A DNA stretch of 64,000 bases from Cercozoa sp. M6MM. Lineage: Eukaryota; Protista; Endomyxa: Ascetosporea. Of the stretch, positions 182-64,000 are shown one piece after another (position 1 is the first letter of the stretch; each line of letters starts with the position of its first letter). The notes beneath the pieces are model-generated. The model saw only the letters and a program-made list of their open reading frames with translations. It was not told where the DNA came from and searched no databases. The stretch lies in NCBI GenBank assembly GCA_040357565.1, contig JBDODJ010000036.1. The stretch is one strand, 5' to 3'. Both the position numbers and the translations under genes were made by a program.

Positions 182-2434
182 TCAAACCAGACTAGAGATC
201 GAGTAAGATTTTGATTTTTCGTGGGCAGGCGCCGATGTCGAGGCTGCAGGTGCCTGTGCACTGGAAGCGTCGTCAATGACAACGACGTCTGAGTCAGAAT
301 CGGCGTCGTCGCTGTCACTGACAAGGTTAGCAGTGCCGAGACTGGTGTCGGTGGTGATGACACTGACCGCTCGTGGCGGCGGTGGTGGTGCTTGGGACTG
401 GTCCAAGTGATCCGTGCTCGCCGAGGGAGCGACATCTGAGGGAGCGACATCTTCGGAGTCTGAGTCGGAATCGTCATGTACTTGCACGTTTGCGAAGGCG
501 TTGCTCTGTCTCTGCGATTCAGCAAGGGTTGATGACTCTCGCTTTCACCCTGTCCATCTCTGTTCCCACACACTTGTACCTTTTCGTCCTGTCCAACGAG
601 AGACTGCAACGTTGTCTCAATCTCTCGCTTCTCGCAGGGCCGAAATTCGAGCGGCGTTTCTGGTGTCTCTTGCAACAACAACTGCAGTGAAGCAAGAGTA
701 TAGGACAAGGCGGTAAGACGGCAAGAAGCAAAGTGGAAGGGGTATAAATACATATCAGACTAGATACTTGCAGTGCCTCGTCTGAAGCGGTCTCGTGCGT
801 CGCAGTACCGCCACAGGTGTCGTCGAACAGTGCCAGACGCACCGTGTAGACCAAATCCACGTGCGACAAGTGTCTAACAGTGCAGAAGATTTACAGGGTG
901 TAGGTGAGGGAGGGTAGACGGGGAGGGGGTACGGAACAGAATCGTCCAGAACACCAGACTTCGTATTGCCCGACTCAAACATGAACTCTAACATACACAA
1001 GAAGATAAATGGTGGCGGGGGGGGGGGGATAAAGCCCACCAAGGTTCTCAACGTGGAACAGAAAAACCGGTCGCACAGCGTCCTCGGACACACTTGCGTC
1101 GGTACTATCAATGTCAGTATCGACTGCGTCTGACAACTGCTTCCGCGCGGAAGTAGATGTGTCTGCGCGGAAGTGAAGCGAGCGCGTTAGTGGCACCGTC
1201 AATCTGTCGCATCGAAATCGATGGCTACCGTCATTCTGACGCTGCATAAATAACATCAGTACAGGAGAAGAAGGTAAGTAGGAGGATAAAGGAGCATGCG
1301 ACAGATAAAGAAGTAGAGTAAGGTTAGAACAGGTACAGCCAGCGACAGTTCGGTGTCTGTACCGACCACGATCCACTGCGACACACTGCGCGAATCGCGC
1401 GGAGCCTCGGTGCGCGTGCACAGTCGTGTCAGCAGTGTCCCACGGAGTGTCCAGACATCACCTGTGATCCTATTGGTGGCGCAGAGGTATACAGAAAAAC
1501 AAGGGAGCGGTAAACTGTGCTTGTACCGCTGTTTGCGCAAGGAAAGCACGCGCGAGGAGGCACGCAGCAGAGCACCAGGCGACACTGACGGTGCCTCCCT
1601 TGAGGAAGCATTAATCTACAGACACCATCTGTGGTATACAGGTTACTACAATAGTATAAATGGGATACATAAGATCAAAGGAGTAGAGGAGATACCACAT
1701 TGAGCGCTAGAATGAGCGAAGTCGACGCGAACTGAAGTTCTTGCAGCAGCGGTTCCAAGTGCGACAACAGAAACGTGCGATCACTCAGTCGGCCACGCTG
1801 TTTTGCCGCCAAGAAAACACGGGGTAAAGGGAAGGGTATTAAAGTTAAGATCGCAGAAAACGGCACTGTACCCACTTGGTGCGACACTTGTGCAGCACTG
1901 TATCTGCGCGGTCGAGCACTTCTCGCGTCTGTCGCACCACGCCATCAACGGCACTGCTCTATGGCACGCGCGGAGCGGGGGGGGGGGGGGGGGGGAAAGG
2001 GACAAAGAGAGTCAAGTGGCAAAGAGAGAAAAGATGGACACAAAAAAGGAAAACGGCTACCTTATGCAGAGCCCAGACGGTGCAGAATTCGAGTGGCTGC
2101 AGTAACGCGCCCATCTGTTGCAGCACCTGCCGCATCTTGCGCCTCACCTCACCATCAATCGCTTCCGATGGCAGCACCTCTACAAGCACCGGCACCCTAA
2201 CTCACGCAGTAGACACAAAAGCTACTCTACCAGTGAGCACCCAGCGAGAGACATCGCTCGCAGCAGCCACTGATGTTGAGAAGGAGCGAGCCTGCGCGAA
2301 GAGCGCCCTGCCCCCAAAAAAGTACAATCACACAAATCTGCAGCACTTTAGGTACACAGTTCACCAGGCGGAAGACAACATTATAAGCAGATCTGTGCAC
2401 ACCCTGCTTTTTGGGCTAGTTATGGTGGGCCACA
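182..2434 (-). CDS. Multi-exon hypothetical protein with acidic low-complexity C-terminus
   Basis: Series of GC-rich minus-strand segments bounded by GT-AG introns (e.g. VRRKMRQVLQQMGALLQPLEF, LSHLEPLLQELQF, PVFLFHVENL, EIETTLQSLV), ending in the D/S-rich ORF 182..487. No family recognised; 5' end uncertain. Confidence 0.5.
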
Positions 2435-2550
2435 TTATCAGCGCCTCGATCGTTGACCACCGCACATTGAAACGCTCCAACTGGCCAAGCGTTTTAGACT
2501 AAATGATTTGCTGCATATGTACAATCCTAGGAGGGCGAAAACGGCGAGAT

Positions 2551-3487
2551 TCAGTCTTTCTGCTGTTTCGGCCGGCGACGACGACGACGCTTGCGTTTCT
2601 TTGGCTGCTCGGGCCCAGGTGACTTGGAGGCAGCGCCAGAGTCGCTGTGTTCCTGCTGAGCAGACTGCGAGGTCCGAGAGGTTTGGGAACTTCCTGGTGT
2701 CTGTTGGGCCGGTTGGACTGACTGTATCGATCTGGTCTTGCTCCGTGATATGTTGCGTGGTGTGCCGGCTTTCTGGCGTTCGATTCGCTCGCGCGGCTTG
2801 TAGGCTGACAGCGGCAGGCCAGTCTCCTGCAACACGGCCGACGCGAAGTGTCGCGCGAATCGTTGCGACAGGAGCGAGCTGCTGGCGTGCGCGGCCACGG
2901 CACACAGGAAGCGTTTCCTCTCCTGGTCCGGGCTTACTTTGAGTACACGTTGCAGCACTACCGCAAATGAGAGAGTCGAGATAACACAAAAGCACAAACA
3001 GAGCGACAGGTAAGGTACCGTAGTTGCCGTAGCGATCGACAATGAGCGACTTGAGTAGATCCGCTTGCACCAACTTCTCGATCACTAAAGGTGTTGCGGG
3101 GTTAGAGCTTAAGAAGCAGGAGAGAGGTAGGAAGCCAACTCACTAGCACTGCGAGTGCCCGACGAGCACCGGATCAAGCACTGTTCGGCCACGTTGCTCG
3201 CGTGTCGGTCGCGACACAGCACGCCTGCGTCGGCACGCAGCAACGCCTTGGCCACACTACATTGGGGGAGGAGTAAGAGTAGAGCATAGGTGACGTGAAC
3301 AGTGTACCGATCGGCAAAGGCGGTGCCCTGCTGCAGCAGGTGCTGCAACACGTAGTTGCCGAAGGCATCGCTGGCTAGAGACGGCGCCAGTGCCACCAGC
3401 TGCGAAATCAATCGTGCGCCCGTCTCTTTCCAATCGGCATGCCTCTCGACCTGTCTCATATACGTGTAAGGTTGTGTGTGTGGTGTG

Positions 3488-3570
<83 letters not shown>

Positions 3571-9096: not shown

Positions 9097-9144
<48 letters not shown>

Positions 9145-10720: not shown

Positions 10721-11059
10721 TCCCTTCGATTTCCACCTAGCGTAGTCATGGCACGTCATCCATCACGTATTCATATTCCGTACCGAACGTGCTCGGCAAA
10801 ATGGCGAAGTTACCGTAGTCTGTCATGAGCACCGGCAGTTTCCCGTCCGGCCGCCTTTGATCGATGGATCGTAAGCGAAGGTAAACTCGAGTTGGCATCC
10901 AGCGTGCCTCGACTGCACAGTATCCTTTGCCCAGTCGGGGACTCTAGATTACTCCTGTAGATCTGGCCAGCCGAGTCAGAAATTGCCGTCCGCGCGGATC
11001 TTCCAAGAAGTCATCAACAGGTTTCGGGGTGGTTTTTTAAAATTTTGCAAACTGCTCAG

Positions 11060-14238: not shown

Positions 14239-14359
14239 TTTGAGTTCAGCTGCAAAAAGCTTGCTACAAGGCTTCCCAGCGAACACACGTCAAAATCTTC
14301 CACACCTCCCTTGAGGATTTTTGTAAGTTGTAGGGTTGCTTCCGCGCGGATACAGTAGA
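14239..14359. repeat. Dispersed ~120-bp element, copy 1
   Basis: Aligns with 33469-33586, including a 34-nt identical core CCCAGCGAACACACGTCAAAATCTTCCACACCTC and a terminal GCTTCCGCGCGGAYACAGTAGA. Confidence 0.9.
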
Positions 14360-15516: not shown

Positions 15517-18500
15517 NNNNNNNNNNNNNNNNNNNNNNNNNNNNNNNNNNNNNNNNNNNNNNNNNNNNNNNNNNNNNNNNNNNNNNNNNNNNNNNNNNNN
15601 NNNNNNNNNNNNNNNNGGGGGGGGGGGGTAAATGTGTTACCTCAGCCGTCTTGGTGGTGGCGACCTCGTGGAACGTGGTGTCGTGCGGCAGACCCTTGCC
15701 GGTCTTGAGCACGTCATACACAGACACGGAGAAGGCCGAGGCCACGGCGTAGGCCAGAAGCACCGACAGCAGCACCGGCAGCACGTGGTGCAACTGACCC
15801 GTCAGTTCGAACACTATCAGTGCAGTCGACAGCCTGTTGCACCGGGAGGGGTAATGGGGGTAAATGGGGTGATGCGGAGGTAACAATACGTTCGCGTGAC
15901 ACCGGCCGTCAAAGCAGCAGCACCAACGACGGCGTAACTGCCCTGCACACACAACAATATAATACGGGAGGGGGGGGGGTTAAAGAGTTTATACCAGCTG
16001 GACATGCGAAGAGGCACTCATAATGCCCATCGCAACGGACAGCTCGGCCTACAGTAGGATAGGAAATGGGGTCAAGGGGGGGGGGTAAGAAAAGATACCC
16101 ACAAACGGCCAAACACAGCGCCAGTCGCGAACACTGGCGAAAACACTCCCGTCGGCAACGGCAGCAGCACACTCACCACTGCAATCACACGCGCACACCA
16201 GTCAGTGAGTCAGTGAGACGGTCAGTGAGTCAGTGAGTCGGTCAGTGAGTCAGAAGGGACCACGTGACCACAAAAAGTACCAGTCAGAGCGAGACGAACA
16301 AAGCAAAAAATCGCGAGGTTGAGCGGCACGTTCTATCAGACGGGAGGGAGGGGTAATGGGGCCAAGTAGATAGGGGTAAAGGGGCCAAATAGATAGGGGT
16401 AAAGGTAGAAAAGGGGATGGTGGCGGGGAGGAGTAAAAGTACAGGCGTGTTCCAGCGCGGAAAGTCGCGCAGGTCCTTGAGACTGAACATGTCGTTGATG
16501 GTCTGGTGTCCCTGGTGTCGTAGCATCGGCGGCAGTGTCAACAGACCGGCCAGAACGGCCACCACCACCGTACCCTTCCATCTGTACCACTGGGAGTAGA
16601 GGTACCAGGAGGCGCAAAGGACACAGGCTACCTGCAGGACAGCACGCGATGCACCTGGCGCAGCAGGCCGCCCAATAGACCGTGCGGCGAGGCAGGTCCG
16701 TGCGTGATAAAGTGACGAACGCGGGCCACACTCCTGTCCATACACCATAGGCAGATTAATGGGTATAGATAGATAGATATATAGGTAGATAGGTAGATAG
16801 GGAGGAAGATAGATAGATAGATAGATAGGGAGATAGGGAGATAGGGAGATAGGGAGATAGATAGACGAATGGATAGACAAGTAGAGAGATAGATAGATAG
16901 ACGAATGGGTAGACAAGTAGAGATAGATGGATGGATGGATAAATAGATAGACATATATATACATACAGTCAGGTGTAGATAGATAGGTAGACAGATAAAC
17001 ATAGATATAGACAGATATAGTGTTTATAAATATAGTACCACACGAAAAAGACGCCGAGACCGCCGCATGTGATTCCCAATAACGAGTACGACACCAGTCT
17101 GCAAGCAAGGGGTATAGGGCAGTAAGCGGAGGGCGGGGTGGGGGGAGGGGATAATTTACTGCCAGTCGAGTTCAAAGCGCTCGAAATCCGTTTCTCGGAA
17201 GAGCTCGGCGATGCCTACAACGGGAGGGGTGTAAAGGGGTGGGGGGCAGGGTTAAGGAGACGCACTCAACTCGCGCATGATGATGAAGACGCAGACCGTA
17301 ACGACGGCACAGTAAAAGCAGCGCCACAAGTTCGACACTTGGAAGTAACTCACCGTGATCTGGGGGGAGGGGTAAGAGAGGGTAAAAAGAGGGTGAGAGG
17401 GGGATTAAAACGGAGAAAGAGGGTGTTAAAAGGGGAATAAGACAGGGGGCTAAAATGAATGTGAGAAGAGACACCTCGATACTGAAGAGCACGCCACCGA
17501 CAGTGGTGCCAAAAGCAGCCGTCACACCGGCCGCCACCGCCGCCGCCAGCATGCGGCGCCGCAAGCCGCTGTCCGCGCGGATCCACTCAAACGACGGCAC
17601 ATACCTAGCCATCAACGTAAGCTATCGCGGGAGGGGGCAAAGGGAGGTATACCGCATGAGCAACTCGGCAATACACGCCGTGGCGTGAACGAAGGGACCT
17701 TCCTTGCCGACACTGAGACCACTTCCCAGGGCCAACGACAGACTGCGCGGGGGGGGGGGGGGGGAAAAGAGCAAGAGGGGTAAAAGTGGGGTTTACCCGA
17801 CACACTTGACGATGAGAGTGCGCAGCGACAGAAAGTAGCGCAAGTGCACGCCCATCAAGACCGAACGCATCTCGGGAATTCCGCTTCCCTGGGATCAAAG
17901 GAGGTAACAAGGAGGTAACAGGGGGAGGGGGGGGGGATGACCAAACAACGCACCTCGGCAGCACGCGAGACCACTCGGCACAGTGCAGTGGCCAGCAGAC
18001 TGAGTCAACCACACAGGTATACATACCCCTACCCCCAAGCATACAGGGCAGTGAGGTGCAATACCTGCAGATCACAGGCAGTACCACCCAACAAACCGGT
18101 CCTACTCACATACATATCCACCTAGTGCATAGGAGGACGAGAAAAGGTGCCTACCGATGCCCTTGTACTCCAGCAGGGCCTTTCGCAGCATGTGCAGTCC
18201 GAGGAAGGAGGCATCCACGGCCACACCTAAGGATACATGCACACACATATATTTATATCTGTATCAGACTGGTAAGCAGGGAGAAAGGCACCTAACAAGG
18301 CAGCAGCAATGGCGAGCAGTGTCAAGAATATCCAAATCGACGGCACGAAGGCATCTCTTCTCTGCGCGTATCTGACCATACCCCAACCCCCCAACTGACC
18401 CAACACAGGACACATGTAGCACCTTCCAAGCTTCTCGGAACTGCTCACTGCGCGACATACGACCTGCGTCACAGGTGAGGTTTAACGCTGTACACAAGAC

Positions 18501-19997: not shown

Positions 19998-22650
19998 TCA
20001 GAACAGGTCCTCGTCGGACAAGAAACCGTCGTCGGAGTCGCCGCCAGTTGTGGCAATCGGCACGGTCTCTGGCGGTGCTTGTTCCTCATGTTCGACGGTG
20101 GTCTCCGGCAAGAGCTCTTGCTCTTCTTGCCGTTGTTGTTGTTGTTGTTGTGCCTCTTGGACTGGAGGAGACTGCTCAGTCAGCACAAACATACAAAAAT
20201 GTACTACAAGGGCGAGGGGTAAGAACACAACGTACGCGCGTAAGGTCGCCGTAGTCGGGCACGGCGATGCCAAGGGCGGCAAAGGCAGCGCGACGCTGCG
20301 CAAGCGTTTCTCGTGTCAGCGCGGACAGCTGCTGCCGCTGCCTCAGTCTGACGTATAGCAGTATAACCCCTCCCCCCCTACCCCGCCCCTGAAAGGAGTA
20401 GTACTGATTCTCGGCAGCGACGCCGGCAACGGGCGGCAGCACCGACACGAAGCACAGGTGTCGCTTGTGCGTGCGCAGCACCTGGTGGAACACCAGGTAG
20501 GCGTCCGTGCGCACGCGCAGTCGACTCGACGGGTGGAAGTACACCTCCGCCTCGTCCCTGTGGGGGGGGGGGGTAAAAGGTAAATGCGGGCTGCGGGGGG
20601 GGGGGGGGGGGGGCAAAGAAACGCACCACACACGAATATGCGCGTTGCTGGCTGCGTCGAATCTCACCAACTATCAGGGGGTAGGGGGTAAGAAAGGGGT
20701 GGGGGTGGGGGTAAAACCTGGCCTACATTGAACGGATTGGCCGAGGCGAGACACATCGAAATGGCGCGAGCACTGTCCTCCTTCGACTCGAGGTTCGGCA
20801 ACTCGTGCGGCTTCACCTGGGGGGGGGGGGTAAAGTGGGGGGTAAAGAGGTGAAGTAGGGGGAAAGAGTGAGTAAAAAGGGTGAGGCAGAATAAGTGGGG
20901 TAAGGGGGTATAGGGCGTACATGTCTCCGATGCAGTCGCGAGCACCAGCGCGCGCACATCTGCCGCAACTGACGGTACGCCTGCACGGCACTCTCCAACA
21001 CACGACGTGACACGTACTTGTTGTGACACCTGCCGGGGTAAACAGGGGGGTAAACAGAGGGGTAAACAAGGGGGTAAACAGGGGGGTAGACAGGGGGTAA
21101 AGGGTAAAACCAGGTGCTAATGATGGCCGAGGAATCGTCCTCGTTGCGACCGCGTTTGATGGCACCTTCCCGTCCTACTCAGTCGGGTCCACTTGTACCG
21201 GTCCAGTCGGGTCCATTTGTACCGTGTTCACTTAAGTAGGTCCATTTGTACCGGTGTTGACCAGGTAGGTGGCGTACTCGTTTGGATCCTCTGTGACGCG
21301 AATGAAGGCGCGCAGCAGCTGCACCTGCACTTGGGCAGTTTTACCCCCCTACCCCATTTACCCCCCTCCTATTACCCCCCTACCAGAGTCATGTGGTCGC
21401 CACTCGGATGAAGGAACTCGTTCCACGCTTCGACTGCCGACGACCTGGGCAGTCCACGTTTGTACTCTTATTCCCATACCCTCCATACCCCCATATCCCC
21501 ATACCCCCATATCCCCCATACCCCATACCCTTAAACCCCCGTACCAAGCATACCCCCGACTGAAAGAAAGGTACCACTCGGAGGCGTTGCGCGAGCGTTT
21601 CCAGACGGCGTGTGCGTTGGGCTGTTCCAGCAGTGCGCCCACCAGCAGCAGGTCGTCCGTGCAGCCCAGGCCTGTCAAAGGGGGTGTGTGGGGGTGGGGG
21701 GTAATAGGGGTAAAGGGAGGTAAACCTTGCTCGACCGAAGTGGGCCGCATCGACAGAAAGACGGCACGTGACATGGCGGCACTCACTGGCATCGACGTCA
21801 TGAAGGCGCCTGCCTCCGTCAGACTCAGCAGGGCTGGAGGGTAGGGGTAGGGGGTAAGGGTGTGGGGCGGGGGTAAGGTGNNNNNNNNNNNNNNNNNNNN
21901 NNNNNNNNNNNNNNNNNNNNNNNNNNNNNNNNNNNNNNNNNNNNNNNNNNNNNNNNNNNNNNNNNNNNNNNNNNNNNNNNCCCCCCCCCCCCACTTTACC
22001 CCATACCCCCACCTACAGCATCACGTACCCGACCCAGTCTCGCCGACCACGACGATTACGCGGCCACCTACACACATCGTTGTGTAGTTTACTCCCTTGC
22101 CCCTTACCCCTTATCCTTATACCCCTGCCCTATACCCCGACCCCAAGACCCCAAAACAAAAAGTACCGCCGCTGGTGGCGTAGAGTGCATTGTACACTTT
22201 GGAAAAGTGTGCTTGTGCCTGTACAGATATGTACACGTGCATTTTTGGACATAGCTTGGACGGTCCAAACGTACGGGCAGGTTGGACTGCCAGACACTCG
22301 CCGGCGGCAGTCGCTCTGGGGACTTCTGTAGCCACAAGTGTACTCAGCCCCTTTGATCCCTCAAACTGTACGCACCTCTTGCCATTGAAACACATCGTTC
22401 GGCAACTCAAACTTCGACTCGTCGTCGACTGCCACGACGTCGTCCATTTCCGGCAGTGCCTATTTTGTTTTTTCATTTTTTGTATTTTTATTGGCGAGCT
22501 CTTAATTAGAGCCCAGATACCACAGCAAAGCTACCAAAACGTAACACTGTGTAATGAACACACACGGGAGTGCATCAGAATGTATGGAAAGTGCTACGAA
22601 GCCCCCTTAAACTATCGTTAGAGTGATCAGCGACAGTCTGAATAATCGCT
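19998..22650 (-). CDS. DEAH-box RNA helicase (RecA core hidden in an assembly gap)
   Basis: Walker A exon RVIVVVGETGSG at 22029-22067 lies just before the N-gap. After the gap: HA2 domain GAFMTSMPVSAAMSRAVFLS..LGCTDDLLLVGALL and OB-NTP-binding region VYFHPSSRL..YLVFHQVLRTHKRHLCFVS. Stop at 19998; start approximate. Confidence 0.85.
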
Positions 22651-22987: not shown

Positions 22988-24000
22988 GGTGGTAATGTGT
23001 ATGTATGTTGTGTAAATGTGCATGTGCGTGTGCAATGGCAGAAGCGTGCCGTGCGACAGTTGTTGCACACGGCCGAGAGACCGCCGGTGCTGCAGGCGAT
23101 CCCGATGGTCGCAGGTGCCGCTGCGCACCTGCTGTTGCTCTGCGTGGTCGTGTCAGCCCATGCGGGTCTGTACCGGTATTTCACCCTCCCCACCCCCTCC
23201 CTTTGCCCACTACCCTATTTTACTCCGCCCTCAGAGTGCTACAGGGTGAGTCGGTGCACGTCGTGGCGATTCCGCTGCTGTTGTTGAGTGCTGCACTGAT
23301 GCTGTACGGCGTTCTCTTTGTTTCCTGGACACTCGAGTGCTGCACGGCCGGCTGTCTGCTCGTTGTCGTAGTTTTACCCCTAACCTCTCTTTTTACCCCC
23401 CTTTACCCCCTTCCTTTATCCCCCGTGCAGTACTCTGCGCTGACTCTGGCTGGCCGGCACTCGCTGCTGCCGCTGCTGGCACTGGCGGCAGCCTGCACGC
23501 TCTACTGCGTTGCACTGCTGTTCGTCGTGTCCTTCTCGTCGCACGGTCGACTACTGGTCTGTTGCTGTGGTGTTCTTGTACTTGTGGGTGTCCGCGCGGA
23601 CATGTTGTTCTGTCAGACCGTGCTGATGACGGTCACGTTTGGAGTGTTCACAACGGCACTGGCGCTGCTACACTGCGGCAGCACTGCGCAGACCAAGACT
23701 TTCGTCACTCTGAGTGCGATGTGTCTGCCTCTTGCGTTTCTGGTATCCGCCGGGATGTTTGCTTGGGTGATTCGCGTCACAAGTGAGTCACTGATGTGAC
23801 CGGTGCTGTGTAGGCTCTGGTGTGTGCACCAGTACAACGATGCGGGAGTCATGCTCACCTGTGGCAGTCGCGACACCTGCACGTGCTGCATTTGGCCGAT
23901 GCTGCGGTACCTCGCCCCTCGCTCTTTCGGTGTCCTCGCGTATACTGTACTCCTGTATAGCACACGCCAGAACGAACATTCACCGAGGATGATGAGGTAG
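22712..24000 (+). CDS. Hypothetical multi-pass membrane protein (~7-8 hydrophobic segments)
   Basis: Six spliced exons with long hydrophobic stretches (LQTLLLSLVILGI, LLLLSAALMLYGVLFV, LPLAFLVSAGMFAWVI). No family recognised. Confidence 0.65.
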
Positions 24001-24537: not shown

Positions 24538-26894
24538 ATGAACGGAACGGAACTGGTGCACGCGACGACCGAGCCTCCGCTCCCTGGCTCACCCTACCCT
24601 TGCGTTGAAGTTGACTTCGACAGCAGGTTCCGCCTCCTGCGACCCGACTGCGCGACCGTCTGCCGCCGCACGACTGATGACGTTTTTGTAAGTTACGCCT
24701 GAACGACAGATAAATAAATTACTAGAAAACTAACTAAACTTAAATCCGAAAAACTAACTGAACGTGCACGTGTACACTGGATGTAGCATTTCGCGCCATT
24801 TCGTTCTGATACCGATGGCTTGCGGGATCGATATCCGCGCGGAGCTCATCACAGAACTGACCGTTTATGATGAATGTTCTGGTAGAGCAAGAACGCAAGT
24901 ATAGTGTATACTCCAGCCCCGTTCTCCAGCCACTGTACACGCATGCAAACTATCACGCTTAGGTTACTTCTTCCGAGCAAGGAAGAGGGACTCACAACTC
25001 TGCTGCAGCAAAACAAAATTTCCATCCGTGTTGGAGAGCGCGCTTATGAGGTCGGTCGCGGCCTTTTGGTAAACCAAGCTGTTATGTGCGCGAGGTTGGG
25101 AGACCTGATAGCGGTATTTGAATTCGTGCTACAGGAACTAGTGATGCCGAAAGTGGGCGTGTGTGAGACAAATGAAACATCGCTCGTAAAGAGAACTCAA
25201 CTGCTTACCGAGAAAAACGTCTCTTCGCTCGGTACAGTAAATGTATATATGCCCACAACATTTCGCTCAATTCAATCCAGTTTGTCTCCCCAGTGACGCT
25301 GCTTCAAACTGGAGAAGTCGAGCTCAGCATAGTTCAAGTTCCGGCTTTCTACGAAATCGGTACTATTTAGTTTATCAGCTGCACGCCCTATATATACGGC
25401 TACTTTACTGCTGTTTGCGGGGTAGGGTTTGACTTGCAGAGTCACTTGCTGTTAAAAGCGCTCAACAAAGTTGTGGCGGCTCGAACTGATCAGTTTTTCG
25501 TGAAGCTTCTTTGCTCAGGGTTGCAAGGCAAACCACTGAGTCGCTATCTCTTTGCTCTTGCTTGTGTGCTGATGCGTGTTGCGAAGTTGTGGCGAGTCTC
25601 GCCCCGAAATTTGGCATCTGCATCCCTCGCGGTGCATTTTACACTCGAGCGGCGGCACCTCATCGAGGCTTTTTCTATGTCGCGTGACCTCTTTCTGATG
25701 TAAGGACGCTCGCTTTCGCATCACTGCACATGGTTTTCTGGAATGATACTGCAACTCAGGCATTTGCTGAAAATATTCGATTTGACTGGGTGCCCGCGAG
25801 GTATTGCGGAACAATATTGTCGTCTGGGTAAGGCAACTTAATTATGTGAAGCTGCCCACTCTGTATCCAGGGAGTACCTTGCGGCGATTTGGCAAGATTC
25901 TGTTACAACGAGCATTTGAATTCACTCCCGCGATGGCTTCGAGCGCACCTCAGTTTCTCCTGTGTTTCATACTTGCTGCGGATCTTCCACAGGCAGCCTA
26001 CCAAAGCAGCACGTTCGAGCAATTGTTTGCCAGGCCTCAGGACAGCTTGCGGAAAAACAAGAACCGGGCGGTAGGAAAGATGTTGAGATCTGCCCTCGAC
26101 AGTCAGAATCAAACAATCAAACTCTACGCCGCGCTTCAGGTTAGCTCGTTGGCATCTCCCCTTTTCCTTTTTTGTTCAGCATGTGCCCTTCAGACATTTC
26201 GCGCGATGCCGCTTTTGCGCGCTCTCATCGCAGAAGAGGAAGTGCTCGAGCTTGCTATAGTGGCGAGTCGGGTCCCAAGAATCAAACGCGCGGTATGTTA
26301 AACTGTTTACACGTCAGTTTGCGTGTTCAGTTTACCTCAAAATTTACTCGCACTAGCACTGTATATTAGTTGCACTCCGGAAACTTGCTTTGTGATGCAA
26401 GTATTTTCAGTCGCAGTTGGCACACGGTATCTTTAACTGCTTTAACTTACACAAACCTCCGAAAACCTTAAACTTACATATGCGGAAATCTCTTTTAAAG
26501 GTGTCACCTCAAACCATTGTGGACGCAGTAAGACAGCATGTGTACGGAGGAGATTTTTTGCACGAGGTCGAAGCTTTGCATGCAGGTATTTTCGCACTAA
26601 CATGTGTGTCGTTGTTTTTATCATGTTGCGAAGCGCGTGGGCGTTTGCCGCCTCCACCTGGCGAAAAGGATGGTGAGTCGATACTTCTGAGCCAAATAAG
26701 TCCGTTTGCGAATTCACAAGGGTCGTGCATGTCGGCGCGTTCAAGCTGTCAGACTAGAAGTAAAAAACGCGACCAACTTGCGCGAGCCCGTCGTTTTCGA
26801 CGCCGAGCTCAACGAAAGTCAACTCAGGTGGTGCGAGCAACTAAACGCAAGTCAAGGTCGTGGAAAAGTCGGGCTCGTGCCCGAGCTAGACTGA
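24538..26894 (+). CDS. Multi-exon hypothetical, largely helical protein
   Basis: Chain of plus-strand exons separated by T-rich GT-AG introns (e.g. LGDLIAVFEFVLQELVMPK, LRRFGKILLQRAFEF). Boundaries approximate. Confidence 0.45.
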
Positions 26895-36052: not shown

Positions 36053-36508
36053 ACACGTGCAGGCATGTGTACAACATGCTGCGTGTGCGACGGCACTTGC
36101 GTCGAGTGCATCGACATGGCCGACGCAAAGTCCACCGCACTTGGCAGTGCTGCACTGCACACGCATACACCATGGGGAGATCAGTATACAAACATAAATG
36201 GTATGGGAAAGGAGGCTACGTGCTGTCAAGACGAAACGTGTTCCGCGCGGAAGGAGGCGTTCCTTGCGGCGGTGTCGGTATGTCTACACAGGCACAACCA
36301 TAAAGAGACGCAGGGAAACAAAGGACACAGGTACCGCTCAGCAGAGGATTGCCCTCCAATAGCGACACATCGTCACTTGTGCTGTCTGCGAACATTGACC
36401 TGCGAACGAACACGAAAGTGACTGAGTACATCCTTGAGGGTCAAAAAGAGAACAATACTCCATCGGAGTCGTGAGCGAAAGCCATTGGTCCGGGCCGATG
36501 TTATTCAT
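33737..36508 (-). CDS. bZIP transcription factor with polyQ tract and C-terminal helical (DOG1/TGA-like) region
   Basis: Basic region and zipper RLKKKAEQARQARARKKAYIASLEEQKRKLTEQLRELK; polyQ at ~35660-35757; C-terminal VGLSQAQIDRVQRLR and FSPRQVAAFV. Confidence 0.85.
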
Positions 36509-49153: not shown

Positions 49154-52100
49154 ACATGTATATATTATGTTTATATTATTTACAATATATATTATATATT
49201 ATATATTATATTTATACCATATTATACATTACAATATATACACATTTAATTTATACTATATATATTATATTTATATTAAATTATTATATTTACATTTTAT
49301 TATCACATATATACCAGGTGACATACCATCACTCGGGTCCACCGACACGACCTTGACGGCACGAATGTCCACGTCACCGTTCTGCAGGTACAGTCGCATG
49401 CGGTGGCCGCGTCGTCGGCGCCATCCCTGACACCAGGGGGGGGGGGAAAGGGCTGATGGGGTAAGAGGGGACATACCAGCGACTTGACGGCCACCAGAGC
49501 CAGCACGAGCAGCAGCGTAGAAAACAAAACCCACAGTGCAAACAGCGATGACTGCGTGGCTGTTGAGGTAGTACGGGGTAAGGAGGTAAGGGAGTAAGGG
49601 GTCAGGGGTGAGGGTAAGGGGTAGGGTGCAAGGGGGCAAGAGATATGGTGTAAGGGGTAGGGCGTAAGGGGGGTAACGATAGTACAAGTCATTGGAGTGT
49701 CGGCAGTAGACAAAGCGAGCGCAGTCAGCAGATGCGCGAACAGCACCATCTATGCGGAAGGGGTAAGCGAGATAAAGGGGGTGGAGGTAGGGTGTAAAAT
49801 ACAATCTCCATAAGGTTGTCCGAGGCACGTCTGTATGGCCACCAGACAGTTTGCACCGCTAAAAACACGGCCGTCAACGAGCCCACCTGAGCACGCCATC
49901 ACACGGGTTATGCCCTTATACTCCACCTTTACCTCTCTCCCAGTGTAGGTACCAAGAAGAGCATGCGAGCGGTCTGTTCTTCGTTCGTGTTGACAAACAC
50001 CACCACCAGCAACAGCTACAGTCGACACATCAGTTTACCCCCATTACCCTTCACCCCCTGTGTTTTTGAGAGACCCACCGTGCGACGCAGGAGAACGACG
50101 ACCTCCCAAAAGTACATGCGCGGTCGGTACACTTCGGTCAGCACGCCGATCTTGCTCTGCGCCGACTGTGTGAACAGCGTCTCTCTGCAGGGGGGGGGGG
50201 GGGGGGGGTGGGGGGTAAGTGAAGGGGATAAGTGGGTAAGTGGATAAGAGGTGCCCTACCGACTAAGTCGACGCCGCATGATGCCGAACAAGTAGAGTGG
50301 AATCCCCAGACCAAACACGATGCCGATAATGCCCAGGAAGAACTGCATCCAATAGGGGGTAAGAGGGGTATGGGGAGGGAGAGAACGACTACCTTGGTAG
50401 TCTTGTAGGAAGTAGAAGCACAATCCATCGATGGATACTGCTTCAGCACTTGCTTGCCGTCCTACACATGTCATACATGCATGGGACAATTGCACAGGAG
50501 GAGGGGGGGGGAAACAGTACAAGACCGGCGTCGGTGCACCCAAAGACCACTTGGATCACAGTGTCCAGTACCGCCGCTGTGTATGCAGGTTAGGGGAGGG
50601 TTAGGGAGGGGTAGGGAACACGAGAATGCCCAGTGTGAACAAGGGTGTCAGTACACTCGTCCTACAGCAGGGGAGGGTAAGGGGGTAAAGTGGGGGGGGG
50701 GGGGGTAAAGGGTACCAGATCCGCGTGAGCGCACTGACGCGGCCGTAGCACATGGAACCGCCCGTCATGGCCACGATGTCTACGGCACACACATTTGTAT
50801 TTGCGCACATCCGCGCGGACACTGGTGACTAGACTACTTACCCATCTGGAAGAGTCCAAAGAACAACTTGGCCACCCAACTGAGCACATGCACACATAGG
50901 TCACATGGGTAACATGACGGTGTGGGAGAAACGCACCCGCTAAGTGAGACATCAATGGCACCGGCGAACATCTTGCTACGCACATGTTGATGTTTACCTC
51001 CCTCCTTTACCCCCTTCCCCTGGCATGGCAGAGATGCCTACCTCATCTGGACGTAGTAGAGCATGATGCGGACCGAGGCATCGCGCAGACTTTGCGCCAG
51101 GTAGTGCATCACGCACACGTACAGCACGTACATCACCTGCACACACAGGGGGGTTAAGGGGTGGCGTGGGGGGGGGGGTAAAGCTAACCACAACAGCGGC
51201 GATGTTGCCGGCGACACTGCCGTCGTTGTCGCACTTGATGCAAGAGCCGCCCCACTCGTAGTACTCGTCCAGACACACGCCGCACAGAGGGTTCTCCGAC
51301 GCCGCCTTCCTGTTCTCCGAACTGCCCGGGGGGGGGGGGGGTAAAGGGGTCTGGGCGAGGGGGGGGGGGGTAAACACGCAGCTACCAGCACACTTGCGGC
51401 TGCGCAGTCGTCGAATCAGCTGTGTCGCTCGCACACAAATCACCGGCCCGACAGTGACCCTGGTAGCACTGCGAGAGGGGGTAAAGGGGGAGGGTAAACA
51501 AAGGTAAGAAGCGTACCCTGTAGGCACCGATGTTGCCAGTGGTTTCGCCATAGTCCAGCCAGTAGTCTGAGGGTAGGAGGGTAGGAGGGTAGGGATAGGG
51601 GTACGGGTAGGGTAGGGGTAGGTAAGGGGTAAGGGTGTAGGGGTAAGGGTAAGGGTAGGAGTAGGAGAGGTAGGAGCCCTACCCTCGAGTGCAACGATCT
51701 GACCGTCGGAACAGAGTGCTCCGGGAGGACACAACTGACACGGACCCAGAACGCGACCATTGGCGATGGGAGCGTACTGCCCGGCACTGCACGGGTTGCA
51801 CGCCGCCAGTCCCGTCACTGGCACGTACTCCTCGCCTTGGCGCACGATCGTGTTGGCGCCAAAGCACGGCTGGCACTGTGCATGGGGTTAAGGGTAGGGA
51901 AAAGGGGAGGGTAGAGGGGAGGGTAGAGGGGAGGGTAAAGGGGGTAAAGGGGGTCGGGGGAAGGGGTAAAACCTCAGTCTGCTCCGGCAGCGGGTTGAAC
52001 TCGAACGCGCCACACTCAACGCACTTTGACTCAGTCGCCGTCACCTAATCATGACAAACAAGCTTGGCATAGACACTTAGGGTTAGGTAGATAGTATGCA

Positions 52101-55100
52101 GACACTGGAAACTACCAGGGCATAGGTGCCAGGAGCACACTGCGTGCACATCTCGCCGCCTTCCGACGTCCAGCCGCTCTTGCAGGGTACACACTGAGCC
52201 GGGTACTCTGACGACGGCTCGTGGTTCGAGGGACACGGCTCGTACTACAGTACATGGGCTTAGCTCCCGTCCGGTTAGACAGAGACACTGTACAACATCC
52301 CTACCTGGATACGGAAGCCAGTTTCGACAACATTCGGCAGGTCACTTTCCCAGTCCTGCCGCAGCACCCGGAAAAAAACAAAGTAACTGCACAGCACAGC
52401 TTGGCTACAGGCAACACTACCTCTTGAGTGTATTCAGTTTCGTTCCTGAGCGACAGCACCTCGAGCCCGAACGTGAAATCGCCTGTCTCAGTAATTCAGT
52501 TGAGAAAAACTGATTTTGGGCTCAAATTGGGACAAACGGACGGTACCAGGCACAGTTTTTGGAATCATTGGCAAGTAAAAGTCCAGGAACATCGAGCCCT
52601 AGTACAGCACACAACGCACAGTTTACAGTAGATAGACTTAGTTTTTTGATTGCCTGGTTTTTTTTAAACTGTGTGGGACTGTACCAGAACGTTGCCTTCG
52701 CCGAGTGAGACCACGGAGTCGTTGTGCAGCGACGCACCACCGATTCGGATGCCGTAGGACATTCGATCGGCCATGTTGATGCACAAGAGGCGCAGCAGTG
52801 CACCTGCTCTCACCCCCCAAGATCAGTCATGTCCGACACTAGACATCACAGGACTCGGGTATGAATACCGGCTCCCGTACGAGGGCAGTTGACCAGGGTG
52901 TTGCCTTGGACCTCGCAGTTAGTCTGACAGAACAAGGTACTGTACAGTGCACACAAGGTACGAGAAAGGGGGAGAGGGTACCCCCGAGACAACGTTGGCC
53001 TGCGACAGTTGGACGTAGAAAGCGCTGCTGTAGCTCAGCAGAGGATAGAACTTCGCCTGCTGTCCGACCGGCAGTGCGAAGGAATCCATCTACAAGGGGG
53101 TAATGGGAGTATAGGGGCAATGAAGGGTAACACAGGTACCATATGTCCGTAGGCCGTGCACTGGTCGGGCGGATCACAAGCCATATCGGTCGGATCGTCC
53201 TGCGCACACAGGTGGGCACAAGTAGGAAGGGAGATAGATAGAAAGGTAGGTAGGTGGTAGGGAGTACAGTTGCAGGAGTTTCGCCTGGCTTGGAGCCGCT
53301 GCGCAGCGCGTGCGACACGTTGAAGTTCAAGTGCACGCGCATGCCCGCTGACATGCCGTATGACTACAAGGAGGACAGTAGAGTAGGGGGTAAAGGGAGG
53401 GTGGGGGGGGGATGAACTCACAGCCGGGCCCTTGGGACTACGGAAGAGCGCAACGATGCCACGTTCTCCGTTGGTCATGTTGAACAGTGTCTCGTTCACT
53501 GCCGAAGGTACTGTCTGTCCAGTACACAACAAACAAGGTGGTCTGGAGACACACTTGAGGCACTGAGGGACACATGGTACCACATGCAGTGTCGCCTGCA
53601 GCGACTCGGCTGTCGACAGGTCCACAAATTCCAAAGCTCCTGGGCAGGAAAAGGGGTAAGGGATCGGGGTAGGGGCAAAGGGGGCTCAACACACCGTAGC
53701 TGATTCGACTCTCCTCGCTCTGCGTCGCCGTCGGCAGCGCCTGCCACTGCGCACGTGTGCCCTGTCGCACCTGCCACCGGTCAGCAATGTGTACAGCCGC
53801 GCGGACCTGCACAAAACACAAGGCCAATATACAACAAATCGCAACTGACAGGACTCTGCTACGCCATGGAAGGCTTGGCGATTCGGCAGCAAGAACACGT
53901 CGAGTCCCGTGCCCGACATTATCAGCCTAAACAGAGGTGAAGGGGTTAAAGAGGGGAGGGGTAAAGAGGCGGTAAAATAGTACCAGTCATTGTCGTCGGC
54001 GTCGACGGCGCAGTTGGACACGGACTGACACAGCTCGACTCGACCGGAGTCACGGCACGTGAACGGTGGCTCGTCGTTGCGACAACTGCCCGTCTCGGTG
54101 TTGGCCTAGTTAAGGGTGAGACAGAGGGTTAATTAAGGGTGAGACAGAGGGTTATTTAAGGAGAGGGTTAGTTAAGGCTGAGGTGGGGTACACTGCGCAC
54201 GGACGTGATAGTGAAGACCGCGTCCTGCACCGACTGCAACTGGCCCGACTCGCGCTGTGGGGTCAGCAGGTAAGCAAGGCAGTAAGGTAGAGACAAAGCC
54301 GATACCATGGCGGCGTAGTCGGGCCACGTGTCAAAGTGGAGCATACTGGAGCCCCAGAAAAACTGGTCCAACTCTGCAACAACAACAAGCAAGTCAGAGG
54401 AAGTGTCTGTGTACATCTATTGGGACAAACGTACCACTGTAGTACTCAAGTTGCATGTCGAAGTCCTTCACTTGCTTCAACTCGGGGCCGATAGAGACAT
54501 ACCTGTCACGCAGCCAAAGGGGCCCAAGGGTGGTGGGGGGTAAAGTGGCAAGGGGGTATATTAAAGGGGTAGAGGGGGGGCAAAGAAAAGGGGAAGCGGA
54601 GCAAGTACGTGGTGAAGTCGACAACGATGCGTCGCGTGTGACGGTTGTCGCACTGCACCGGCGACAAACAGTCCGCGCGGACAAAGCCGCGTCTCAGCTC
54701 CTCGCCTGCTACCTGCTCCGGCGCCTGTTATAGGTCACACTTAGACCTTCCGCGCGGACACCACCACGGTCTGATAAAATTACCTTGACACCGAACCACT
54801 CGGGTCGAATGCCAGACGCGACGATTTCAATCGCGTGTCGCGGCATCGGCGAGCTACACGGGGTATAAGGAGTGCGGGGTGTCGGAGTAAGGGAGGGGTA
54901 AAGGGGTAAAGAGGTAGTGACGGAGGTAAAGGGGTAAAGGATACATCATGGTACTCGCAGAAGTGATCGATATGTCAACTGCCGCCTGTACAAGAGGGGG
55001 TGTTAAATGGAGGTAAAGGGAGGTGGGGGGGGGGGGGTAAAGTGTACCACAGGCGTCATGACAGCCGCCGACAGTCGCTGCTGCGGCGCCAGAGTCAGCA

Positions 55101-58100
55101 GACGCAGCCGCGGCTTCTCATACTGTCTCAACAACACACAAGCAACACAAGCTCTAGTTGTTGTTGAGACTGTTGTTGTTTACTTGATTAAAACAAGAGG
55201 TACGAACGGCTGCAGTCGGAAGGAGTTGAATACGTTCGGAACAGTCGGCACCTGTCAGACACATCACAGTTGGGGCAGAGTCAAGATGCACAGAAAACTC
55301 AGAACCTCGCCGTGATTCTCCAGACATCCCGTTGAGCCGTGGCGAGCTGTAGCCACCTCAGTAAGCTAGCTCAGAAACGTCAACACGCACAGACACAACA
55401 CTGACCTACCTGGCAGCTGCAGGTGGAACACGAGCTCTAATGGAACGTCATTCACTGCCAAGCACACACATCGCGAAGCTGAACACCACTCCACACAACT
55501 GTACAGTTCTCGAGTACCCAAATCCAGCTTGTACGGCTGGAGGAACGAGTGAATGTCGAACGTCACTTCCGACAGGTATCTGCATTGTCAGGGCACACAC
55601 AAGGCATATCGACAAATTTACCTTCAACAAAACAAGGCCTACTCAATGCCAGTCGCGGAACTCAAGGGACCAAAGGACCACCTAAGAAAACACTCATCTC
55701 AGTGATCACCACACTTTTGGAAAACGCTATACTGCTCGGGTCCGATCCAGAAATACTTGGCCTCGTCGCTCTGTAAACTGACATGATAACCGGGAGGAGA
55801 AAATACGCTAGATACGACAAAGGCTTGGTACCGGCACATAGGGTGCAGGCGATCCGGTCATGTTGACGTACGTGGGAATGAGCATCACACCGGCCAATTC
55901 AAACTGTTGCGAAGTAACTGGTTAAAACATACAAGTGGAAAAAGTCACGAGAGAACGCACTTTGTTGCCCCGGCCATCGGTAGCGTTGCTCTTCTTTGAC
56001 CAGTCCTACGCACACGGTCCGCGCGGATGCACCGGAAACCAAGGAGGGAGGGATATTCAAAGAGGTACCACAGGAAGGGCATACGGCAACGAGAGCGTGA
56101 GGTTGTTGTGCGAGTCAATGTCGCCGTAGTTCCACACGACGTCAAACATCTGTAGAACCATCCAACATCAGGGATGTCGCCATCTACCAAAAAAACAATG
56201 CAGTGGCAAATACATTCGGCTGCTCCGGTAGCGAGAAGGTCGGTAGCACTGTATTTGACATTTTCGTTGAGTATACATACTTCAACGACATCCAGGCGTA
56301 CCAGTCCCGTTGCACATGTCCTCGCGTGCTCCCGTCACTCTGAAAGCAAGGCAAAAGGTGGTCAGTCCCTAGACAGTCAAGATAGCAGTACGTGAAGGCA
56401 AAGGTACTCATCAGGCCACGTGTAGTCCAGGAGCCACCCGTTGTACGTGCGTAGGAAGCGATCGCTGAGAACCGTCGGTGTGCACAGATGCGTCTCGCTT
56501 TGGTCGTTGGCGAAATTGGGACCGTAGTACCCGAGGCACCTGCGAACACACACACAAGCAGGGTATGCTGGCTTCGACTGATGGCAGATCACTAAAGGCC
56601 AACTTACTCAAGTACAAGTACGCCCAATGGAACGCGGTCCACACCGAGCGACAGTGCCGTCCAACTGTACAGTAGCCGGGGTCAAAAATAATGATTCTTC
56701 TGTCTGACACGAAAGTACGGCAGTGCGCCCAAGGACACAGCATCGTTGTTCGTGCGTAAGTGCTCGCTTTCGTACACCTATGGGAGAGGACATATAAGAT
56801 CGGGTAAAAACGTAGGGGGTAAAGGTGTGCAAACCACTTGCGCAGAATCCACGTTGAGGTTTCGATATTTCAGTCTGAAGGCGACTTTCATCAGTCGGTC
56901 GTTGTCAGGACCCAGAGTGTCCTGCAAAGGAAACACACAGGGAAGGAGTGGTAAGGTAGTCAGGCAGGGAGATCACGAGGTATGACTGACCGCCCAGTTG
57001 ATGCCGAGAGCGGCACTGTCGAGTACTGTCGAAGGCAGTCCATGCGCATTAAGAGCAGCCGCTTGCAGCGAGAACTGCAGTCATGGGGAAGGGGTAAAAG
57101 GTTCGAAGGATAAGAGAGGGTAAAAAGGCATACCACAGGACGACCGTGCATGACAACACCGAGCGACTGCGTGGTCTGTCTGGACCAACAAGAGGCGATT
57201 TCGTCGCCTTTGAAGTCGTGGCACGCGCTTTCGTCGGCATCGCGGTACAGGTCCATCTGTATCAACACACATATATAAACATATATATATATATATATTT
57301 ATCCAGCATCTGTATCCACAATACCTATATCTACATTTATACATAGTATATCTTTATACAATATGTATACTTGCGAAAGGTGTATCGTATACCTTTGTAC
57401 AATATCTAATATCTTTGTATGCATATATATATATATATATACTACATCTGGACTGAAACAAGAGACAACTGACCGCGCCAAAGACGAAACGACCCGTCAG
57501 CTCGATCGCGTTGCCGTCGCTTGCGAATCGCGCCATCTTGCGCAGTGAGGCATCTGTGCACACTCTCGCCAGTACACTAACAAAACATACTCTCGAGAGA
57601 AAAGGAGCATACGTGAGAGGTAGACATCGTGTCGGTAGGTCATTTGAGACACGTCAATCACCGCTGGCAGTGAGAAGGTTTTCTCTGGGTAACCCTCGGT
57701 GACGGCCTAAACACAGACGACCGATACGGCCCTTTCCTTGGGATGGGGCACGGTGAGGACATCGTACCTCCCAACGCACATCACCAGGCAGATCAGGGAT
57801 TCTCGGAGAGCTGCCTTCGTACGGTTGACCTGGCATTCTACGCATGTTGCGCAGCATCACCGCGACACTGAACGTGTCAAAGGTGCCTGTGCGGTCGGAA
57901 GACATAGACCATACATATGTTTAACAAAAAAACTCATTGGACCACGTACCGAACACGTCGATAGGAACCTTGGGCGAGCTCGCGCTGACTAGGAGGTGTG
58001 ACGGAGTGAACGGCTCGACTGTGACACTGTATTCGGGCTGTCTGGGTCCCTGAAAGGTCAGTGCGTACGAATCGTCGTCTTTCTGTGCATGAACAAGTGT

Positions 58101-58845: not shown

Positions 58846-58912
<67 letters not shown>

Positions 58913-59854: not shown

Positions 59855-59936
<82 letters not shown>

Positions 59937-59946
59937 NNNNNNNNNN

Positions 59947-59997
<51 letters not shown>

Positions 59998-61424: not shown

Positions 61425-61523
61425 GTGCGCTTAAAGTTTTGGTGGCAATCTAGCAATTGAGCACGTGTATCTTAACGATCACTGCAAGGATTTGGCACTT
61501 CTTTATCTGCTAGAAGTGAGTAA

Positions 61524-61946: not shown

Positions 61947-62041
61947 CCAGTTGTTTCTCAGTTTCGTTTCTTTTAAATCTAACGTGTAATTCTCACGAAC
62001 GTCATTCGAGTCGAGTCAAGTCATCACAGGGTCCAATTGGT

Positions 62042-62316
62042 CTACTCGGCGCCCGACTGGGCGGCCACTTCGGCGAGTTTCTTGGCACGCCGCTCGCGCG
62101 ATCGCTGCACCTGCTCGGCGCGACGTCTCCTGTGCAACAGGCACACACATCATCGACAGAGAGACAGAAGGCTATGTCAGGGGAGCGCCAGGATCAGAGA
62201 CAACAGTCGGTACCAGTAGTCGATCTCGTCGAGCGAGGCGTAGAACGGCGTGGTCACCTCGGACTTCCAGAAGTGGTACCTGCGAGTACATGTGTGTGTG
62301 TATGTGTGTGTATGTA

Positions 62317-62363
<47 letters not shown>

Positions 62364-62432
62364 CCACAGACATGCGGTGTACCACTTAATTCGAGCGTTA
62401 TCGAACCAGAGTTTCTTGAGGTCTAAACAAGC

Positions 62433-62463
<31 letters not shown>

Positions 62464-64000
62464 ACATGGAGAAATATACCAGTCAGTGACACGGACTCGG
62501 GCTCGCCCAGGGCAGCAAAGTACTCCCTGGCCTAAGGGACGAATGGGAAGTAACGGGGGGTACAGGCAGAGAGTGCATAGCCTACCAAGTCGTTGCCAGT
62601 GACACGCGAATATCGTGGTGGCAAATACGCATCCCTGGGGGGTAAGACGAGGGGTAGACAGGGGTATAGGGGTAAAGGGGAGGGAGTAAAGGGGTAAGAA
62701 CCCACACACCGGTGTGTCATGGCGGCGGCACGGAAGTGTCCGAGTCGCAGCAGGTCGTCCAAAAACTCAGCCAGGGTCTCACGCGACATGCTGCTCCGAC
62801 CGAAGGCATCCCACGCCAGGTCGATACGGCGCATATGCGCCAACAACTGCGCCGAGATACAGGGGGAGGGGGTAAAGGTGGGGATACAAGGTAAAGGTGG
62901 GAGGGGGCAAGAACGACCTTGGTGAGCTGTTCCCTCTCCTCGTCGGAGGAGACCTCGCCGAGGTCAAAGGCGGCACTGGCCTCCTCGAGAGTGTCATCGA
63001 CACTGGCCGCATCCAGCAGCGACAGAGCGACCTGGACGTCGCGCTCGTGCAGCTGCACCTGGCCGTGGTGCGGTTGTGCTACAGGGGGGTAAAGGGGGTA
63101 AGGAGTAAGGGTAAGGGGGAAGAGGTGGAAGGGATAAGGGGTAGGAAGAGGGGAAGAGGGGGTGAGGGGGTAACAGGGAGTAACAGGGGGAGGGGGTAAA
63201 ACGACACCTCTCGCCTTGGTGAAGAGCGTAAGCGTTTCCCATTCGTTCCACGGACGCACCAGTTCCTCCTGCCGATTGGCCCACTCGCCCTGGCAGCAAG
63301 GGCAGGGGGTAAAGAGGGGGTAAAGAGGGGGTAAAGAGGGGGGTAAACAGGGGGGTAAACAGGGGGGTAAACAGGGGGTAAGGGGGAAAGACACAAAAGG
63401 CACCGGCTGATACAAGAGCAGCGACTCGTCGGAATTGACGAACTTTTTGGGACGCCCGCTGGCGATGGCAAGATCCTCCTTGCTCACCAGGAACTCGCTA
63501 CACCCCACAGTACCACCTGAGTCACAGGTCTTTCCCCTTAGGCAGCACCTCCGCGCGGACAGAACGAACAAACCTGTTAGCCGGCCGGCGGGCGCGCAAG
63601 CCGCGCAGTGTGGTACACAGCTGTAGTCCCAGTAGATCCACCTGTGCCGTGTCTACATTGAGGGAAGGTAAGAGGGGGTAAGAGGGGGTAAGAGGGGGAT
63701 AAGAGGGGGAAGAGGGGGTAAAACCGCCTACCCTTGGCAGCAGCAGCCAGTTCGCGCAGCTCCAGCGGCGTCAGCCACGAGGCCGCCACGAGGTCGTTGA
63801 TATCGGCGCGCTGCGCGCCCTGTCGACATGGGGTAAACGGGGTCAGGGGTAAAGGGGGCCAGGGGTAAAGGGTAAGGGGTAAAGGGTAAGGGGTAAAGGA
63901 GTAAAGTGGTAAAGGGCTAAAAGCGGTTAAGACTGCAATAGACAGCACATACCAGCGACTCAGCAGCCGCATCTTCTGCGTCATCTTCGACACTGCGATC
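62042..64000 (-). CDS. Multi-exon hypothetical protein, 5'-truncated by the window edge
   Basis: Spliced exons ..AWDAFGRSSMSRETLAEFLDDLL.., KKLWFDNARIKWYHFWKSEVTTPFYASLDEIDYWRRRAEQ..; stop TAG at 62042. Confidence 0.65.

Follow-up and report, generated by a model that had tools for sequence, protein, structure and literature searches.

A ten-letter palindrome in the window and across the assembly

The stretch of DNA analysed here, referred to as the window, comprises 64,000 nt of contig JBDODJ010000036.1 of Cercozoa sp. M6MM (assembly GCA_040357565.1). It contains 14 perfect copies of one 10-letter palindrome, TCCGCGCGGA, which an earlier note on this DNA had likened to the cyanobacterial highly iterated palindrome 1 (HIP1). 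A pattern search returned each of the 14 coordinates given in that note. The six one-mismatch variants listed there were also present, but the list was incomplete: two more, TCAGCGCGGA at 20316 and TCCTCGCGGA at 30494, were identified (n = 8).

The copies at 1142-1151, 10989-10998, 23591-23600, 24834-24843, 36242-36251 and 56018-56027 are non-coding by the codon model described below. The first of these is followed after 20 bp by a one-mismatch copy, TCTGCGCGGA (1162-1171), forming a short 20-bp array, while the copy at 23591 lies 46 bp past a predicted plus-strand exon and that at 56018 lies within a large minus-strand gene region. Minus-strand predicted exons flank the copy at 50810-50819 at distances of 23 and 224 bp, and the copy at 63550-63559 at distances of 50 and 173 bp; both copies are probably intronic. 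On the minus strand, the copy at 54749-54758 sits centrally in a 59-nt stretch that is probably a GT..AG intron and whose excision fuses two open frames, and the copy at 54672-54681 falls in a low-scoring predicted exon, read in phase 1 as F-V-R-A-D. The copy at 17572-17581, also on the minus strand, lies in a coding exon in phase 1 and is read as W-I-R-A-D inside a Voltage_CLC match (PF00654, E 9e-10). Predicted exons of divergent orientation flank the copy at 32580-32589.

The two other copies, at 14341-14350 and 33568-33577, are partners in a paralogous pair (14239-14359 and 33466-33590). The former adjoins a conserved block of 34 bp that is identical in both paralogues and reads GVEDFDVCSLG on the minus strand. 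The motif and ~12 flanking bases are kept in the two members, and the intervening ~25 bp are divergent, with a length difference of 4-5 bp.

Dinucleotide-preserving shuffles of the window (n = 100) contained 0.04 copies of the word on average and one at most, and Markov models of orders 1-4 fitted to the window gave an expectation of 0.04-0.06. With orders 5, 6 and 7 the expectation rose to 0.37, 3.1 and 11 copies, because the sub-words of TCCGCGCGGA are themselves mostly parts of the motif. A recount of the octamer CCGCGCGG agreed with the earlier one, with 17 occurrences in the window, 14 of them in the T...A frame. Across the whole assembly (23.6 Mb in 2235 contigs), TCCGCGCGGA was found 2239 times, or once per 10.5 kb, compared with 33 occurrences of a reversed-letter control word, a difference of ~70-fold. 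The enrichment that had been claimed from the window was borne out both locally (14 against 0.04) and genome-wide.

When up to one mismatch was allowed, the assembly-wide counts were 5087 for TCCGCGCGGA and 920 for the reversed control. The 30 possible one-off sequences average ~95 copies each, against ~30 for the one-offs of the control. A single exact word stands out as a sharp peak, with a modest halo of variants around it. Additionally, in the 264 kb of unbiased sequence used for word statistics (the window and C1:1-200000), TCCGCGCGGA reached ~150-fold over the expectation of an order-3 Markov model, and the only other 10-mers near this level were microsatellites, words overlapping TCCGCGCGGA and telomere-like G-rich words. 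The related palindromes TCCGCGGA, TCCGCGCGCGGA, TCTCGCGAGA and TTCGCGCGAA showed no enrichment in the same 264 kb, where TCCGCGGA occurs once and TCTCGCGAGA and TTCGCGCGAA are absent. These counts confirm the over-representation of TCCGCGCGGA in both the window and the genome.

Some copies occur in tandem arrays (on C64, C364, C50 and C15), as might be expected of an assembly or adapter artefact, the remnant of a single repeat family or a transposon footprint. However, such arrays hold only ~1/10 of the copies, and ~90% are solitary. The flanks of 50 copies were unrelated, as the earlier note had reported with the exception of one repeat pair; the short 20-bp arrays are a further exception. 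Logan contigs, an independent assembly of public run X1, reproduce 50700-56100 with zero differences and span the copies at 50810, 54672 and 56018. The window locus was contained in one public DNA run and in zero RNA runs. All four assembly gaps occur within tracts that are G-rich or of the (CA)n/(GT)n type; they are 1.1 kb or more from the nearest copy and affect only distances measured across them. Furthermore, the reading frames of conserved proteins cross the word without insertion or deletion (indel). Unrelated flanks and in-frame, indel-free coding copies rule out a transposon body or footprint and a repeat family, in line with the earlier reading, and neither the insertion origin nor the confinement to non-coding DNA of repetitive extragenic palindromic (REP) elements, miniature inverted-repeat transposable elements (MITE) or transposon footprints was observed. 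An artefactual or repeat-family origin, already refuted for most copies, is therefore given next to no weight.

Telomere-like G-rich tandem tracts, with units such as GGGGTAAA and GGGTAAAGGGGA, were observed in non-coding DNA, within the window at 16349-16405, 21035-21101, 51885-51943, 63305-63378 and 63830-63921. They give rise to many alternative joints in the read contigs, from 51347 to 55024, and are therefore repeat-collapsed in short-read graphs. A gap of 100 N at 21881-21980 (region 21836-22025) has a G-rich telomere-like tract on its left and the C-rich complement on its right; this inverted arrangement may account for the break in the assembly at that point.

The extended element and its setting among genes

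Statistics of sequence context rest on ~300 kb, comprising the window, 200 kb of C1 and several further loci. With both sides of the core folded together, C is favoured and G avoided at +1, a purine occupies +2 in 83% of cases, and C is favoured and A avoided at +3. Relative to generic CGGA context, the bias from +1 to +3 is significant (chi-square p 1e-5 to 1e-8), and it is symmetric about the core. Because it reaches +3 on both sides, the full element is a palindrome of ~16 bp, with the consensus G-Y-N-core-N-R-C around TCCGCGCGGA. The minimum distance between paired copies is 12 bp centre to centre, with an abrupt rise of counts at 18, and together with the flank bias these values fit a footprint of ~16 bp.

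Close pairs are far more frequent than expected, with 59 against 4.2 at gaps of 0-19 bp and 76 against 6.6 at gaps of 20-50 bp, giving 135 pairs within 60 bp where ~11 were expected. Pair distances cluster at 18-22, 24 and 27 bp. Two thirds of the shortest are multiples of 3, as in coding-like tandem repeats, while the remaining close pairs belong to non-coding arrays. Many pairs fall at 18-22 bp, about two helical turns, but no clean 10.5-bp series was seen. For instance, the array at C64:32712-33378 (L031-L035) is an open array of 8-9-residue units with 14 motif copies, in which 13/13 spacings are multiples of three; one strand translates to LFRADGIRS and the opposite strand to AVRAEE. In a non-coding example, a 101-nt GT..AG intron at C15:16007-16107 (L025:1472-1572), three copies 20 bp apart make up 30/101 bases. 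This intron splits the glycine-rich loop of a kinase (GTLGK|GAFGHV), which is cyclic-nucleotide-dependent, with cyclic-nucleotide-binding-like exons upstream. Scans of metagenome and viral contigs for the paired word returned just high-GC bacterial contigs and unrelated minisatellites.

Since the word is self-complementary, any two copies are mutually complementary, and a function at the RNA level was therefore considered, in which a transcribed copy, from either strand, would pair with another copy or bind an RNA-binding protein. The abundance of close pairs, including the three within one 101-nt intron, is compatible with this idea. It is at odds with the solitary state of most copies and with the symmetric flank preference, which is what recognition of duplex DNA predicts, and an Rfam search of the window gave zero matches. 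We regard this explanation as very unlikely.

Coding DNA was predicted with a codon model that was seeded on amino-acid composition, iterated, and checked on ubiquitin, prohibitin and kinase exons; it recovers these exons and misses weakly biased genes. An earlier codon model trained on the longest open reading frames (ORFs) was discarded. The ten longest ORFs of the window gave zero Pfam matches. Third codon positions are strongly biased to C and G, and exons are short. Among the copies in unbiased sequence, 5/27 fall in predicted coding DNA, compared with 5.7 expected from segments covering 18-24% of that sequence. Copies were found in spacers and, as previously described, in introns and in the exons of unrelated genes; within exons they occupy all three phases. 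Exons supported by Pfam or by homologues include those of a CLC channel (the copy at 17572, phase 1), a cysteine desulfurase (phase 1), a PI3/PI4-kinase (phase 2) and the ELP1 propeller (three copies, two of them in phase 2 and the third in phase 1). A copy in phase 0 lies in a short-chain dehydrogenase ORF, whose Pfam match is weak (E 1e-3) and does not extend over the copy. In the cysteine desulfurase, TCCGCGCGGA encodes IRAE in a variable helix, where homologues carry ITNE, IAAR and IRDR and align without an indel; the word therefore arose there by substitution. The best homologues of this exon in the protein collection have at most 68% identity.

The preferred codons xTC-CGC-GCG-GAS spell TCCGCGCGGA in phase 1, but independent codon usage predicts only ~2e-5 copies per codon, or ~60 copies in an assumed ~8 Mb of coding DNA. 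Among 16,156 predicted codons, amino-acid frequencies predict ~5.5 peptides of the form [ILVF]RA[DE] and 6 are present, yet 4/6 are spelled by the exact word where codon usage predicts 0.44. Similarly, the exact word spells 1/3 of the SAR[x] peptides, with ~0.02 expected. Because the spelling is enriched and the peptides are not, the force acts on DNA and not on protein; it overrides synonymous codon choice and is too weak to change amino acids. Codon bias alone is accordingly ruled out, as the earlier note had argued.

Several observations could be taken to indicate an ordinary transcription-factor site, that is, a palindromic promoter or enhancer element whose exon and intron copies would be intragenic regulatory sites or by-products. 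The element is a palindrome of 10-16 bp and forms homotypic clusters. A few copies are close to a probable gene start or separate divergent exons, among them that at 32580 and that at C1:190780, ~170 bp upstream of a large minus-strand ORF. In addition, the genome encodes an E2F/DP domain, and the CGCGCG core of TCCGCGCGGA equals the E2F/DP core. However, coding DNA is not depleted of copies, some of which lie deep inside conserved exons, and no concentration upstream of genes, as expected of promoter sites, was observed. The GC and CpG content of the flanks equals that of random positions, which rules out a CpG-island or GC-rich context. The best cluster examined is that within the intron of the kinase glycine loop, and perfect copies far exceed degenerate ones, unlike typical factor sites. 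A search for Zn2Cys6 domains (PF00172) gave no match, although the control genomes cannot match this family and the power of the search is uncertain. A transcription-factor site is hence considered improbable, albeit less so than a function at the RNA level.

Copies are spaced exponentially along the sequence (65 intervals; coefficient of variation 0.97, Kolmogorov-Smirnov p 0.64), and copy density varies over a 4-fold range between contigs. Neither periodic nor quasi-periodic spacing, a property considered in the earlier note, was seen among these intervals. Regular spacing is thereby ruled out, and the distribution lends no support to evenly spaced origins or anchors. A factor of chromatin, replication or recombination, as the earlier note suggested, may nevertheless be involved.

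Two other genes on C1 were observed. A minus-strand open frame of 755 residues at C1:185732-187996 (L019:5732-7996) has protein-like composition and adjoins a WD40-containing ORF; it has neither a Pfam match nor a homologue among 5.8 billion proteins and looks like a lineage-specific orphan. In the polyubiquitin gene at C1:197540-198346 (L020), interruptions between the repeat units produce separate open segments.

The proposed force acting on the word

In the model of Elhai 2015 (PMC4390886), HIP1 is created in a methylation-dependent manner, and the earlier note had extended a methylation link to the present word. Here, a methyltransferase would recognise the palindrome, and repair dependent on methylation would generate or preserve it. 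The behaviour of TCCGCGCGGA as a palindrome present in both coding and non-coding DNA resembles that of HIP1, and the word contains three CpGs. On the other hand, an exon-wise search of the assembly, which may be incomplete, gave no match to the C5 methyltransferase family (PF00145) or the N4/N6 family (PF01555), so that the bacterial-type enzymes proposed as candidates were not found, and no Vsr domain was matched in the same search. The methyltransferase families were matched in control genomes, and the same method yields 149 kinase segments here. Composition gives no hint of methylation either, as CpG observed/expected is 1.00-1.06 in the window and C1:1-200000, where TA is depleted (0.65-0.74).

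The one-off variants bear on the same question. Genome-wide there are 2848 one-off copies, with ~240 per transition class, ~165 per transversion class and ~270 for the CpG transitions (apportioned). These classes were obtained by counting Y at the three CpG cytosines and the two outer pyrimidines, with singles apportioned from doubles among the matches listed. Per class, CpG-transition variants are only ~1.4-1.6 times as common as other variants. This ratio is below the many-fold excess of 5-methylcytosine, yet it does not represent a depletion such as strict T:G correction would produce. The three CpG-to-TpG variants in the window, previously read as a sign of methylation, consequently carry no such signal. 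Taken together, we judge a HIP1-type methylation link to be unlikely, hardly better placed than a function of the transcript.

The explanation that we favour is that TCCGCGCGGA forms the core of a ~16-bp word recognised by a putative sequence-specific protein, which is probably dimeric given the symmetric 16-bp consensus and the minimum pair spacing. The word would multiply wherever a near-match exists, by point substitution rather than insertion, and would then be maintained by a weak, position-independent directional force. This force would most likely be biased transmission, with the protein tilting mismatch repair or meiotic gene conversion towards the motif-bearing allele. Two routes can be envisaged: a Vsr-like choice of strand during repair, or a motif-bearing chromatid that is itself a local cold spot, with breaks falling on the homologue that lacks the motif, which is then copied from the motif-bearing one. 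The analysis shows that the word is over-represented and exact, extends into its flanks, arose by substitution in coding DNA, is indifferent to gene features and bears no signs of methylation; that a protein reads it, and which force acts, we infer. We assign a probability of about 40% to biased repair or gene conversion acting through such a protein. This account is preferred because the word ignores genes, shows random spacing and regional variation, and is as dense in coding DNA as in free DNA; the 4-fold range of density between contigs is what would be predicted for a force that follows local recombination.

If the counts are taken as a stationary distribution, the scaled advantage would be ~3 for a perfect copy over a one-off, ln(2239/95), and ~4 over background, ln(2239/33). 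An advantage of 3-4 would be comparable with that of strong codon bias, and we propose that the word therefore overrides synonymous choice without changing amino acids.

A location-independent selected function, in which each copy confers a small additive benefit as with Chi, uptake sequences or GATC strand-discrimination sites, fits the observations almost as well as biased conversion. Such a site might load, or be recognised by, a protein of repair, recombination, replication or chromosome architecture, or it might mark self against foreign DNA. The exactness of the word, its footprint and its override of synonymous codons apply equally to such a function. Moreover, the paralogous pair has retained the motif with its nearest flanks despite divergence of the neighbouring 25 bp, and the excess of pairs within 60 bp, many of them at 18-22 bp, suits cooperative binding. 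Random spacing and the 4-fold range of density, however, indicate that no set density is kept. The equal density in coding and free non-coding DNA would be odd if sites were costless elsewhere, and tandem duplication within coding repeats, at spacings in multiples of 3, accounts for many of the close pairs. A selected function is thus a possible though less probable account.

Some points weigh against biased repair or conversion. No candidate protein was found, and a Vsr-like domain is among those missing from the assembly search. Transition variants are not depleted, contrary to a strict T:G-to-C:G repair drive. The conserved motif in the paralogous pair and the arrays at about two helical turns would fit a selected binding site equally well, and data from a single genome do not discriminate between biased conversion and weak selection. 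The coding and non-coding calls, furthermore, derive from a self-trained model of moderate sensitivity and a sample of only 27 unbiased copies. The broader proposition, a highly iterated palindrome of 10-16 bp in a eukaryotic nucleus, with thousands of sites, synonymous positions of housekeeping genes among them, that is sustained without methylation by a motif-specific transmission bias or as a Chi- or uptake-like mark of self, is placed somewhat short of even odds.

Comparison with known iterated words and implications

Among known systems, the HIP1 class of cyanobacteria comes closest. As in HIP1 (GCGATCGC) and other cyanobacterial iterated palindromes, the word is exact, short, grossly over-represented in coding and non-coding DNA, and spread by substitution. 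It differs in being another, longer word (10 bp, ~16 with flanks) and in residing in a eukaryotic nucleus with spliceosomal introns; a cognate methyltransferase was not found in the assembly, and the spacing is not quasi-periodic. Its density is also ~10 times lower, with one copy per 10.5 kb compared with ~1 per kb for HIP1 (PMC4390886). For HIP1 itself, selection and a by-product of biased repair are both debated (PMC4390886; PMC13756078). A second parallel is the E. coli Vsr repair at Dcm sites, a sequence-specific process that moves near-cognate words to the cognate one, as we propose here. In E. coli, the effect of Vsr on word counts is small, a methyltransferase partner is needed and the T-variant is depleted, whereas Vsr, methyltransferase and depletion were not found in the present case.

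Bacterial DNA uptake sequences and uptake signal sequences (DUS/USS) and Chi are likewise short, high-copy words that occur regardless of gene context and are tolerated in compatible coding DNA. They are upheld by drive or by small additive benefits. Unlike TCCGCGCGGA, a palindrome for which strand bias is impossible, they are non-palindromic, strand-biased and tied to competence or RecBCD; to our knowledge, neither machinery is to be expected in a eukaryote. Among palindromic CG-rich factor sites, the nearest are presumably the orphan CGCG element TCTCGCGAGA (BANP/ZBTB33), the palindromic E2F site and the PDRE/NIT4 site TCCGCGGA. The element shares with these 8-12 bp palindromes, which are bound by dimers, a TC...GA frame or a CGCGCG core, but they concentrate in promoters and CpG islands, and TCCGCGCGGA does not. 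In the literature searched, TCCGCGCGGA occurs only in primers and human TERT promoter sequences, and no description of an iterated palindrome in a eukaryotic nucleus was found.

Iterated words of the HIP1, uptake-sequence or Chi type are known to us only from bacteria, and whether they originate through selection or through biased repair has been under debate for thirty years. The present reading, if true, would provide the first description of such a system in a eukaryote. The organism has introns, shows no sign of DNA methylation and probably undergoes meiosis; a eukaryotic case would untie the phenomenon from bacterial methyltransferases or competence and offer an independent system for telling drive from selection. 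The override of synonymous choice in conserved genes matters for models of codon usage and substitution in this lineage, and the word itself could readily be used to isolate its putative reader protein.

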